Source: Dimorphilus gyrociliatus
Taxonomy: Eukaryota; Animalia; Annelida
Assembly: GCA_904063045.1 (NCBI GenBank)
Contig: CAJFCJ010000003.1
Coordinates: forward strand, 248,001 to 312,000
DNA: 64,000 nt
Reading direction: 5' to 3'
A program made the position numbers and the translations under genes. Below the pieces are notes generated by a model. It saw only the letters and a program-made list of their open reading frames with translations, had not been told where the DNA came from and ran no database searches. Positions 53,423 to 64,000 of the stretch are shown piece after piece. How positions within the stretch are numbered: the stretch's first letter is position 1; every line of letters begins with the position of its first letter.

Positions 53423-55743
53423 ATGAATATTAATTCTTTTATTACAATCGGTGATTGGCCGAATACTTCCGAAATTAGCTTTCACTCCCAGACCATGAAC
53501 GATAGCGGCCAGATCTCTTTTTTTGAATTAAAAACAAAAAAAAGAAAGCTAAGTGAACTTTCGGACGATAAAAGCGAGTTTAATGCACTTTCGTCAAACG
53601 AAAATTCTCAATTTTTAGAATCGGAAAAGTGCGAATTTTCAACAATTTTCTCAAATGATATTCCACAGAATTACGATAATGAAACTTTTTCGAAAGATCA
53701 AAGTTCAATTTCCACAATAAATAGTGAATTATCTGCACCATTGGATTTATGCATAAAAAAAGAGGAGGAGGAAATAGAATGCGCGATATGTTCCGATAAA
53801 GCAACGGGATTACATTACGGTATTTTAACATGCGAAGGGTAATACTTTTATTTCTCTATATTAACAATAAAGAAACAGTATGTTATTTATATAGATAATA
53901 AATAAATAATCTTTCAATTAAAAACTTTAAACTCGTTAAAAGACAAAGTAATTTAAAACTTTTTAAGTCAATTATATATAGACTGAATATGCATGCTAAG
54001 TATGTGTGCAATGTATTTGTTTTACTGTATTTACCTATGGGTATAAAGCTTATCTGTCTTTAATGCGTAATGTATAATGTGATTGTAGCAATAGTTGGAA
54101 AGATAGAGGGAGAAACTTTATCAAATGCAACTTTAAATCATAAAGTGATATTATAGAAAGAAAAAAAAACCAGGTATATCTGGGGCCTAGGAATATCACA
54201 GCTATATGCACAAAAAATATCAATATATAAATATATAACAAGAGAGAGAGAGAGAGAGAGGAAGGAAGGGAGGACGAAAATGAAAAGAACGAAAAGTTGT
54301 TTTTTATTAATAAAAACACATAAACATACGATTTTAATTTAGTATTTAGTTGATTTTTACAGTTTTTCCGTTCTTGAACACTGTACTTTATCGACTTTTT
54401 AATTAAATAAACAGCTTGCAGAATATATATATATGTATATATATATATACGATTATAGGTTAACCACCGCAGCGAGCATCTATCGCTCTAAACAGTATAC
54501 AATGTTTCTAGACAACAAAAAGAAATATAAATTGGATGGCCTAACTTTTTCAAGCCCAATTTATCTGGTTTTTTTTTAAAAAAAAAAAACTTGTAATAAA
54601 AACACTAATATTTCTGATAATAGAAAAGTTTGGTAAACTTTTTATAGGCTGAAAGTTTTATATTATCGGTAAATTGTCAAATATCCTTGTTGAATGGATG
54701 CTTTTTCTTTATATATATATATATATATATATAAACCAGACAAATATAACATGCTCACTTTATCGTTATGCTGGCCTATAATATTTATTTTGATTATTAA
54801 TTTATTCGTCAGATGCAAGGGATTCTTTAAAAGAACAGTTCAAAATAAAAAGATTTACGTCTGCACTGAGACTGGGAATTGTATTATTACAAAATTAAAA
54901 AGGAACAAGTGCCAATACTGTCGTTTTAAAAAATGTCTTAACGAGGGTATGGTCTTAGCGGCTGTTAGAGAAGATAGAATGCCTGGAGGTAGGAATAGTG
55001 GCGCCCTCTATGCGAATTGCGATTCAAAATATAAGAAATTAAGGAAAAAGATAAAAAAACAACCGAAACAGACATTGAATCTAAATGAAGGATCTACAAG
55101 AGATATTCAAGATTGGCTATCAAATTTTCATAATAAAACTAAAACGGAAGAGATTTGCGAATCGGCTAAAGTTGAATATCTAAGTAATGAGGAAGATTAC
55201 TTCCGTAATACTTTATCTTATATATCTCTTATTCAAACGATATCTAATTGCGAAAAGGATGAATTTCTTCCGACTGGCATCACGAGTTTGTATTCTGGCC
55301 AATTCGAAAATCAATTTGTTAATTACCTTGTACAATGGGCTGAAAAAATTCCATATTTTAAACAACTTTCTTTAGAGGAGCAGACAAAAGCCTTAATAGC
55401 CAAATGGCCTCAACTCTTAATGTTAATATATTCGGATAATAATTACTATTTGCCTAGGAATCATATTCAAATTATTGACGAACTTCGCGACTATTTCATT
55501 AATACCGGTATTAGTCGTATAGAAATAGGCCTACTAAAGGCATTTTTGTTGCTTTCTTCTAATAAAATTTACGGCGAAGAAGTAATAAAGACGTTGAAAT
55601 ATCATATATATTCAACAAATGGATTAGACAATTACGAAGAGAGAGTTGATAAGTTTTTGAATTTATTAAAATTTATAGAAATGGCGGCCGAAGAATTGGC
55701 AAAGAATAATTTACTCTTTTCACCCTTGTTACCTCTTGTTTAA
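53423..55743 (+). CDS. Hr4: Nuclear hormone receptor Hr4/GCNF-like (NR6A), two exons (53423-53838, 54813-55743), 448 aa
   Basis: A phase-2 intron (GG|GTAATA...cgtcag|A) restores [33 protein letters not shown]...[31 protein letters not shown], the DBD and C-terminal extension typical of Hr4/NR6A. The LBD signature is [11 protein letters not shown]...KWPQLLML. Confidence 0.85.
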
Positions 55744-60687: not shown

Positions 60688-62996
60688 CTAAACGTCGTCG
60701 GCGTCAAAAGTCCTTCCGTGAAATGATGCCACGGCCGTTTGTAAACCCATCCTTCTTTGTTTCCTTCTTTCTTCTATTAAGGCTCTGGCTCTTTTCTTTT
60801 CTAATAACACTTTAAAAAAGTTATGAATAACAGCGTCGGCTAGTTCGCACATTGTTAAAACAGACGCGCCGATAAACAATCCCAGTGAACCGCCGATATC
60901 GGACCATAAATTTGTGACTTCGTATCCAACTTGTTGTTCAACGTGCTCGTAATACAATTCCTTCATAAAGACGTCAACTTCCATAAAATTACTTCTAATG
61001 AAAGCAACGTCAATTTCATTGCCCTGCTTGAACTTGTCGAGGTCTTGACGCCAGGCGGAGAAAGCTTTAAAGAATCTATCGTCCGTATCGCCAACTTTTT
61101 TCGACATATCCGATTTATTTTGAATATCGCCCATCGTCTTTTCAATTCGTTTAGTAATTTTGAAAATCATATTAACAGTTCGCCAAGGAAGATCGATGCT
61201 GTAAAAATGTCTTATCGAAGTACAGTCACCTAAATTTGGTTGCTTCATCGCTCTATAATCTGATGAATTTGTTCGATATCCATCAGCTAATTCCATATAA
61301 AACTTTCTAGTTATTTCCTCATCACCAATCGATACCAAAACACCGAGATAAGTGTTTGTAAATTTTTTCCAATCGTGGTTAAAGTTTCTAGTTCTAGCCC
61401 TAATATCGTTAAAAAGCACTTGAAATTGTTGCATCTTTTCAGTTACACCTCCCGATAGAATTCGTCGGGCTAGTTCAGTTTTACTTGAATTTTTTCCAGC
61501 CGAGATATAAGCTTTCGATAGATTAATTTGACTCTCGAAAAATGGCCATATAACTTTATTCAATTTGTTCATTAGGTCGTCAATATTACCGAGAAGCATA
61601 AGTAGATCACTTCTTTCCTTAAGGAATAGAGCGTATTTCTTATCAAAACTAGTCAGCTTCTTTTCTAATTCATCCCTTATCGAGTAGATAAGATCTTCTC
61701 TGATATATTGTCTATGCTTCACCATTCTCTTTGCGGCCGATCTCAAACTTTTTAAAGTTGAAAGGTAGTCGTTTATTTGTTCTGGTTTACTTGATTTTAG
61801 AAAATCGTGCAGATCAGTTAAATTGTGGAATGTGGCGTTAACGTCTTGTTCAAGATTAACAAAATGTTCATAAGTTATCTTCCATTTTTTAGATAGTAAT
61901 TCACTGGGAACAAGAGCTAATTTATACTTTTCGGGAAACTCTCGAAAGTCTAAATTTGACAATTTATACGGTTTTCCACTCTCGAATGCTCTTCTTACTT
62001 TTACCAAAGAAGAAACAGAGTCTTTTGCCAATTTTCTTTGAACTCTGGTCGCCTTCTCAGCCTGCCATAGATACAAGTTTCGTTCTTTAGTAGAATTTGA
62101 TAGCATAGCCTTTTGAATATTCAATTTCAAATCGTAGGTAAACATTCTCATATTTGTCGTTAAGGAAGACAGCAATTCATCTTCGAAATTTTGCCAAGTG
62201 GCTAAAAAGCTAAAAGTAGTAAATTTAACGACAAATGGAAGAGCAAAATTCCTATGAAATTGGCATCTGCACTCGTGTTCTCGCTTTTTATCTTTAACTA
62301 TTTGATATAAATCTTGTAATATTGAATTTATTTGAATAAAAGCCTGGTACAAAATCTTTGACGTCCTCCATACCGCTTCAACTTTCTCTCTATCCTTACT
62401 AACGGCATGAGGTTTAACCTTCTGACCCGTTTCTCTAGCTTTAATATAATTTTGCTTTAGATTATGTATCCTCTTCCCATGAAGGATCCTATCCGTATCA
62501 AATTCGGAAGTGGTCGAATAAGATATACTAGCCTCGTACATTGTTCTACTACAAGGCATCGAACAAGAACAAGGATATCTCTTTTTCAGCTCTCCCATTA
62601 CGCAATATTTCATATCGCTAAAGTTACATACAGGATAATTTTGCTTCGTATTCGTCTCCTTTCCGGCTGGCATGTAAACTTCTCTACATTTGCAAATATT
62701 GCCAACATGTCTTAGTTTACATTCAATTTTACATCCGGGAATCGAATACAAATCATAGTAGTCTAACGTTTCTCTATCATCACACTTTCCATACGGATGC
62801 TTTAGATTATTAACTTGAAGTATTTGCAAGCCAACCAGGGCTTTTGACGATGGCGGAATAGCTTGTCCGAGCTCCCTTACAAGAGGAACTTCTTGTTGAT
62901 CGTGAACCAAAATTTTGAGACCCGCAGCGTTATTAGGTCCTTTCATATATTCGTATTGTTCAATATTTATCTTAACTGAAAGACCACGGCCAGCTC
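60688..62996 (-). CDS. DEG/ENaC (ASIC-like) sodium channel subunit, final exon only (5' exons not found in the window)
   Basis: Acceptor ttctttttag at 62997-62998, then GAGRGLSVKINIEQYEYMKGP..AGLKILVHDQ, Cys-rich thumb (C..EC...C.C...C...C.C...C), and TM2 WSDIGGSLGLFIGASVLTMCE with an intact GAS filter. Open to the stop at 60688. Confidence 0.93.
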
Positions 62997-64000
62997 CTAA
63001 AAAGAAAAAATTATTCTTCTATTATCCTATTACCAATAAAATAATATTTCCTTATTAATTCAAATTAATAAATATATCTAATTAATTAACTAATTACATT
63101 AATAATCAAATTTATTAGAGTAAAGTCGAATATTAATTGAATATTTGAGCTAATCTTGCCTTATTGACAGGCTTGTCGATTTCGAGTACAATTTCGTCCA
63201 ATAAATAAGATAAGAGTCTAGTCTTTAATCCGCGTTATAAGAATACACTTAGTGGCATATGGATATTAATAATTGATATTTAATCAAATCATAAACCTTG
63301 ACAAATTAACAAGATGGATAAATAGGGAAGAAGAAGAAGAAGTATGATTGATAAATATTATTTCCATTTCTTCTTCTTTAATATAAATACGGTCACTTGT
63401 AGAGATGTCAACTATAGACAATTTAATTAGTTTTTAATAAACATTTCCTGCGAGACTGTAAGGGAGAAAAGCCATTAAGAAATAATTATTCATCTATTTC
63501 ATCATCCCCCCTCCCTCTCTTTTTTCTCTATATCTAGACGAGTTTTATGCGCATTTATGACATTTTGAAGTTGAAGAAAAGAGATCTCCAACAGTTATGA
63601 TACGAAATAGCAGAAAATAATGCGGAGAAGAGGAAGAAAACTGAAGATATACATGTATAGCTATACAAATTAAGAACTCTAAACATACTAATTTGTTGTT
63701 AAGTCCCCTAAGTTATTCGAACATATTCTTTTTATAATTTCTCTCTCTCTCTCTCTCTCTTCCTCTCTAACTGCTATCTCTCTGTCTCCTTGTCACATAT
63801 GTTCGTTATTGTTTTTCTTATCTAAACAAAAGTTAGCAATCTTAACTTTTCTTTCCCTAACTTTTAGAGAGATCTTTCATTGAAACAACTGCAAAAGTAA
63901 TCTTCTTAATGGTCATTTTTTATAGTCGAGCTATATACAATTTATACAACTTGGTTTTCTTGAAAATTTATCTTAAATATTTATCTCTGATTCTTTTATA

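Follow-up and report, generated by a model that had tools for sequence, protein, structure and literature searches.

The 64,000-nucleotide stretch of the Dimorphilus gyrociliatus genome analysed here (contig CAJFCJ010000003.1, positions 248,001 to 312,000, which is G000:C3:248001-312000 in our numbering and is hereafter called the window) carries on its reverse strand the last exon of DgyrCDS2005, a protein that stands in the public record without a functional name. We are highly confident that the gene is intact, has three exons and encodes a 1,004 amino acid (aa) ASIC/ASIC5-like subunit of a DEG/ENaC cation channel, and that some 470 residues have been added to the extracellular knuckle, which forms the upper outer corner of the subunit, between its α6-like and α7-like helices. 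The stimulus to which a DEG/ENaC channel responds is thought to depend on its outer domains (finger, thumb and knuckle), and the DEG/ENaC knuckles known to us are all short. The expansion in DgyrCDS2005 is a whole, confidently foldable domain, conserved in at least three spiralian phyla and tied by very short linkers to the gating strands of the channel, and such stalk channels are a natural test of an extracellular arm driving or tuning a trimeric sodium channel.

The longest open reading frame (ORF) in the window (752 aa, with the runner-up at 349 aa) lies at 60688..62946 on the reverse strand, in DNA of about 30% G+C. Upstream of its first ATG the frame remains open up to a polypyrimidine tract and an AG acceptor (62997-62998), so that the third and last exon of the gene starts at 62996, reading (G)AGRGLSVKINIEQYEY..., and occupies 60688..62996 (-) with its stop codon at 60688-60690. 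The first two exons are beyond the window end and were located by tblastn using the annotated paralogue on contig C19 as the query. Exon 1 (G000:C3:316421-316663, reverse strand) contains the start codon and the HG motif (TTLHGI), and exon 2 (G000:C3:313319-313777, reverse strand) contains the first transmembrane helix (TM1; LVWILLLLGGIGVF) followed by YPAVTLCN, a motif like FPAVTLCN. The three exons join in frame with canonical GT-AG sites and compatible split codons, and the exon model is identical at every residue to DgyrCDS2005 (P0096; CAD5112795.1).

The full protein matched the Pfam ASC family (PF00858) with an E-value of 2.5e-89 and 300.9 bits (the curated cut-off being 23.6), and sequence features of the superfamily are present: two transmembrane helices, a Cys-rich ectodomain, the HG motif before TM1 and FIGAS in TM2. 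Exon 3 matched ASC with E 3e-44 and 152 bits in two stretches, the first of which covers ORF aa 6-162 and profile positions 225-394, the domain being split at position 394. The core before this split (62506..62996, -) comprises the β-ball, palm, Cys-rich thumb and strand β10 (YEASISYSTTS), and residues 1-159 of the exon were aligned by HMMER with chicken ASIC1 214-376, the thumb cysteines falling on those of ASIC1. After it (60691..60990, -) come strands β11-β12 (NFMEVDVFMKELYYE), TM2 and a cytoplasmic tail ending in DADDV, with residues 665-725 aligned to ASIC1 398-458 and with strands at 673-678 and 685-687 and a helix at 694-757 when exon 3 was folded as a whole. The codons of the G-A-S selectivity filter are at 60862..60870 (-) and align with GAS of ASIC1. 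A preliminary description of the window, made from the letters alone, had proposed a DEG/ENaC subunit with an intact-looking pore, and this is borne out by the ASC match, the GAS filter and the sequence DIGGSLGLF, all of which are present.

Among solved structures, exon 3 was closest in sequence to ASIC1/2 (E about 1e-34), then to ASIC5 (about 1e-23), FaNaC (about 1e-15) and ENaC (about 1e-14), and the best solved relative of exon 2 was ASIC5 (E 9e-20). The core of the model of exon 3 superposed on ASIC1 and ASIC5 structures with Z 10.4-11.6 and showed the strands and the thumb helices (9e4c_A, Z 10.9 and root-mean-square deviation 4.0 Å over 186 residues; 9mky_A, Z 10.4 and 3.9 Å over 190 residues). 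Five residues (H73, D78, K211, E411 and E416 in rat ASIC1a numbering) are fairly conserved across all ASICs (PMC9949801), and of these only E416 is kept in DgyrCDS2005, H73, D78, K211 and E411 being V, A, T and K respectively (the equivalents of E411 and E416 were taken from the HMMER alignment and those of the other three by ungapped counting from the FPAVTLCN and GxGxGL anchors). Because only one marker of the five is kept, we do not file the channel as an ASIC. The 77.9 Mb assembly holds more than 100 ASC matches, and a word search using the core yielded nothing besides the three relatives of this gene.

The insert is bounded by YEASISYSTTS and NFMEVDVF, with exactly 505 residues between them (60991..62505, -; full-protein residues 400-904, ORF aa 148-652), and it takes the place of ASIC1 377-397, the 21-residue knuckle between β10 and β11. 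The preliminary description was right that there is an insertion here, while its size and bounds (about 495 residues at 61012-62499) were a few codons short on each side. It was right also in siting the insertion at the knuckle, while its suggestion that the knuckle had been replaced does not hold, as α6-like and α7-like helices look retained in the model. These native helices would be formed by the first 30 or so residues of the insert (helices 165-172 and 177-194) and by its last 8 or so (664-670, VAFIRSN, within which HMMER aligned AFIRSNF with ASIC1 QYIGENI), and thus the net addition of about 470 aa, the stalk, would sit between α6-like entry helices and an α7-like exit helix. The seven N-x-S/T sequons and three cysteines counted in the insert at the outset were confirmed, the family median being 8 sequons, and the insert is probably glycosylated. 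The insert of DgyrCDS2005 has a net charge of +27 and that of the orthologue described below +25, as against +4 to +8 for the C19 paralogue and -8.5 for the median of the family, and so its strongly basic character is a charge shift specific to the lineage of DgyrCDS2005 and its orthologue.

AlphaFold2 was run on the insert with an alignment of 46 sequences, all models being of monomers, and gave a mean predicted local distance difference test score (pLDDT) of 90.9 and a predicted template modelling score (pTM) of 0.81, with 86% helix and no segment below 50. The helices cover insert residues 11-30, 32-117, 119-135, 139-176, 201-238, 241-335, 352-395, 397-412, 446-464 and 474-495, the two longest having 86 and 95 residues. 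Together with the split ASC match, this agrees with the large helical extracellular insertion first suggested at the knuckle. The amphipathic, heptad-like runs noticed in the letters were likewise recovered, hydrophobicity recurring every 3.46-3.58 residues along the long helices; for helices 241-335 and 446-495, 0 of 500 shuffles reached this periodicity. When exon 3 was folded in context, pLDDT stayed above 90 over most of the insert and was 75-84 at the junctions. At the entry, two residues separate β10 (150-162) from the first of the helices 165-172 and 177-194, and at the exit two residues separate helix 664-670 from β11 (673-678). Each copy of the stalk is predicted as a self-contained bundle, and from the helix lengths and the bundle matches we infer two stacked antiparallel four-helix bundles sharing the 86- and 95-residue helices, which at 1.5 Å per residue would give a stalk about 13-14 nm long. 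The distal four-helix bundle (insert residues 87-286; 61648..62247, -) was matched by VIA-align to generic four-helix bundles with Z 10-15; two of the matches span residues 30/37-492/497 and the others lie mainly within 87-286, the proximal tier being barely covered.

That the open frame of the insert is not due to chance follows from the probability of 505 stop-free codons at 31% G+C, which is about 1.6e-18. An orthologue was found on Logan contig L028 (run SRR23372229) with 90% amino acid identity in the insert, and comparison of the window gene with it by the Nei-Gojobori method gave ratios of non-synonymous to synonymous substitution rates (dN/dS) of 0.013 for the core and 0.036 for the insert, with dS about 1.6 for both. 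The C19 paralogue has an orthologue of its own, on contig L029. For the paralogue pair, dN/dS was 0.045 in the core and 0.109 in the insert. The two Dimorphilus paralogues share 40% identity over the entire insert, with long invariant blocks. These data show that the insert is constrained by selection.

We built a family profile from four inserts and compared it with 1.84 billion representative proteins; 90 protein clusters matched at E<=1e-3, of which 48 also passed E<=1e-10, and many of the matches span profile positions 1-500. ASC was found on both sides of the insert in all of the full-length or near-full-length matches scanned (7 of 7), the first ASC stretch ending at 388-393. Named members come from Capitella teleta (2), Lineus longissimus (3 genes), Tubulanus polymorphus (1) and Lingula anatina (1), and they match the profile over positions 1-500 with ASC flanking both sides; the suggestion that similar long subunits lie unannotated in other invertebrate proteomes is therefore correct for these four animals. 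All are labelled hypothetical or uncharacterized, and in Lineus both pairs of annotated isoforms retain the insert. Many of the profile matches are ORF-sized pieces of 500-560 aa, running from β10 to just short of β11, and so the domain is usually a single exon in other species. We define a spiralian knuckle-stalk DEG/ENaC subfamily, which has had no name, by a full-length profile match of about 500 aa between ASC positions of about 390 and 399, and DgyrCDS2005 has such a match in that place. Being present in annelid, nemertean and brachiopod channels, the stalk domain is old and has been kept by selection. Across the phyla the best conserved blocks of 40 residues are insert residues 81-120 and 161-200, in which polar and aromatic positions are included. 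Column conservation over 46 sequences picks out a block at insert residues 80-115 (62161..62268, -) with R80, F83, H84, L89, F100, W104 and D109/E110, the family consensus of which is R..FH...GL..V.Y...H.F.RGW....ERTL.

When the D. gyrociliatus genome was searched with the family profile, the window gene scored E 1.3e-130 and the C19 paralogue E 2.7e-117, and one further ORF, a divergent one, was found on contig C1. This third copy (L030:5960-7414 (+), equivalent to G000:C1:1099959-1101413) matched with E 7.9e-10 over profile positions 299-525 and has FH and NAD motifs. It is flanked by TM1-like and β11-like ORFs, the remaining ectodomain being unusually short, and it may be a very divergent or a decaying channel gene.

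Pfam searches with the insert of DgyrCDS2005 and those of 46 family members gave only sub-threshold noise. An ABC_toxin_N match in one Capitella protein (E 2.9e-4, below the cut-off) was discarded as it did not recur in other members. The family profile matched only designed or low-complexity helical proteins among PDB sequences, and Foldseek of the insert model against the PDB gave no match at E<=1e-3, the sensing domain of McpZ (8f7n) being at rank 4 with E 0.11. A wide search with VIA-align returned designed bundles, ligand-binding domains of chemoreceptors and sensor kinases, talin, vinculin and ClyA, with scores in the range which the tool calls common for helical bundles, and look-alikes from the ESM Atlas were dynein tails with a low recognition score, which we read as a generic long-helix signal. 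Our literature search found no paper describing the insert domain, a knuckle insertion in annelids or Dimorphilus, or the accession labels, and the D. gyrociliatus genome paper states on ENaC only that the repertoires are canonical. The sequences of the domain are thus public, but they are unnamed and without a Pfam family. The proposal of an uncharacterised subfamily is upheld; Pfam, PDB-sequence and Foldseek searches gave no specific relative and the named members all carry "uncharacterized" or "hypothetical" labels.

The genome also has a second set of channels, here called subfamily B, comprising at least 12 paralogous DEG/ENaC genes, several of them in tandem, in which the knuckle holds an insert of about 500 aa in the identical position (G000:C20:20736-38202 and contigs C116, C118, C41, C78, C157, C46, C138, C57 and C124; L012-L022 and L027). 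Their insert usually shares one exon of about 777 aa with the core. Their cores are the nearest paralogues of DgyrCDS2005 (30-38% identity) and the first 30 or so residues past β10 are alike, but the subfamily B insert has six invariant cysteines compared to few in the DgyrCDS2005 family, and hhalign of the two sets of inserts gave a probability of 2-6%, with no detectable homology past those first residues. A core-only tree (178 columns, 28 rows, with only four insert-less paralogues of the genome and no named references) placed all insert-bearing sequences in one clade (support 98/97), within which the DgyrCDS2005 family had support of 91/71 and subfamily B of 100/99. A single ancient insertion followed by divergence is plausible for both subfamilies. 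A further DEG/ENaC locus (L016; G000:C12:788000-797500), the core of which groups beside subfamily B, has its thumb-to-TM2 stretch split into long ORFs of 461, 276 and 391 aa, and its extracellular addition may be larger still or of a different kind. Runs of N several kb long occur within or next to insert-bearing channel genes on C146 (L021) and C116 (L027 and L009), and an apparent open frame of 3790 aa at C146 extends through one such run.

According to structures from the Gouaux laboratory, strands β11-β12 and the lower palm reportedly couple the ectodomain to the gate in ASICs. As modelled, the stalk of DgyrCDS2005 would be joined to palm strands β10 and β11 by its two-residue linkers at entry and exit, and β10 and β11 would in turn lead down to TM2 and the β11-β12 linker, by which gating is controlled in ASICs. 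Because these linkers would sit directly on the gating strands, we read the stalk as a built-in, fairly rigid extracellular arm. A macromolecular partner, for instance matrix, cuticle, a cilium or an adjacent cell, would be bound at a conserved site in the outer half of this arm. Pull or displacement would then be transmitted to the gate, the stalk serving as a tether or lever made of protein through which force or contact gates the channel. A review (PMC10178586) gives a gain-of-function variant at the β10-α6 linker of ENaC, and also cites N-glycans of the αENaC knuckle and palm as reported matrix tethers for shear-force sensing (Knoepp et al. 2020). Tentatively, we propose as the likeliest of the roles considered that the stalk is a built-in tether or lever which binds such a partner and passes displacement to the gate. 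Several points weigh against this proposal. The net charge varies widely in the family (+27 here, median -8.5), which argues against one common electrostatic partner, and the conserved outer residues could be a structural core instead of a binding site. The predicted length and tiering of the stalk are drawn from helix lengths and partial bundle matches, and, as exons 1 and 2 are absent from the model, confidence in the fold of the core flanks is only moderate. It is improbable that the three stalks of a trimer would together make a tower of about 13 nm which provides a force- or contact-gated DEG/ENaC with its extracellular gating tether or spring, attached by the conserved outer motif to matrix or ciliary material and pulling on β10/β11. 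If true, such a tower would be a protein-encoded tether within the channel and would offer a direct handle on the long-debated DEG/ENaC tether model. The stalk channels may in any case bear on the question of extracellular tethers in mechanosensation, and cloning and testing them is straightforward because the proteins are already public, as "uncharacterized".

A stalk with no direct gating input might instead be a crown or spacer, stabilising the trimer, raising the channel through a thick glycocalyx or cuticle, or guiding trafficking or clustering. This would agree with a self-contained helical bundle in which conserved positions are mostly hydrophobic, and with the many sequons and variable net charge of the family. 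Subfamily B, with an insert of similar size and unrelated appearance at the same site, also suggests that bulk could matter more than sequence. Such a purely structural or assembly role does not readily account for the strong conservation across phyla of outer-half residues that are polar or aromatic (R80, H84, W104, D109/E110 and K195), for a dN/dS in the insert nearly as low as in the core, or for the attachment of the stalk by two-residue linkers to the gating strands, and we regard it as somewhat unlikely.

The stalk might also be a sensor, with bundles that bind a soluble small molecule, ion or peptide and so open or modulate the channel. The DEG/ENaC family includes peptide-, proton- and bile-acid-gated members, and four-helix-bundle domains of bacterial chemoreceptors and sensor kinases bind soluble ligands. 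The distal bundle scored Z 11.0 against PcaY_PP, 11.7 against Adeh_2942, 9.9 against Tsr and 10.0 against TorS in VIA-align, and the fourth-ranked Foldseek match, McpZ, is a domain of this sort. Such Z-scores are, however, typical of any helical bundle, designed bundles giving higher ones (Z 12-15), and the PDB-sequence and Pfam searches found no sequence similarity to sensor domains. We regard a ligand sensor as decidedly less probable. That the insert is missing from the mature protein, as a retained intron, an open frame derived from a mobile element or a spliced-out annotation artefact, is hardly credible and was rejected, for although exon skipping is conceivable in other species, where the insert is apparently on its own exon (we found no other support for it), in DgyrCDS2005 the insert and both core flanks share a single exon, the public models of DgyrCDS2005, its paralogue and the Lineus isoforms all contain it, and a chance of about 1e-18 for the open frame, a dN/dS of 0.036 and conservation in three phyla speak against a reading in which it is not translated.

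With regard to the host locus, a nuclear hormone receptor gene lies about 5 kb from the channel gene (window 53423-55743, +); its ORFs of 139 aa and 349 aa hold the halves of a nuclear-receptor C4 zinc finger (PF00105) and a weak match to the ligand-binding domain (PF00104). The C-terminal DADDV of the channel (window 60691-60705, -), which we take to resemble a class III PDZ-binding end, recurs unchanged in the L028 orthologue, whereas the C19 paralogue lacks it.

Compared with known systems, the stalk resembles the bundles of bacterial chemoreceptors and sensor kinases (PcaY_PP 6s18, Tsr 2d4u, TorS 3o1h, McpZ 8f7n) in being an extracellular antiparallel bundle with its ends near the membrane-linked part of the protein. 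The structural Z of 10-12 against 4HB_MCP-type sensor domains is within the range of generic bundles, and as these domains have no sequence relation to the stalk and belong to another kingdom and host protein, the likeness is one of analogy only. ASIC1/ASIC2 and ASIC5 (BASIC; e.g. 6ave, 2qts, 9mky) are the closest solved structures by sequence and have the same order of palm, β-ball, thumb, β10, knuckle, β11-β12 and TM2 as DgyrCDS2005, with the thumb cysteines, HG motif and GAS filter in common; chicken ASIC1 differs in having 21 residues where DgyrCDS2005 has 505, and four of the five ASIC markers are changed in DgyrCDS2005. ENaC is a much more distant relative than the ASICs (exon 3 E about 1e-14), but its knuckle, at the same structural position as the stalk, is glycosylated and has been proposed as a link from matrix to gating. 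In ENaC this tether is a glycan on a short knuckle, whereas in DgyrCDS2005 the knuckle itself incorporates a stalk of about 470 aa.

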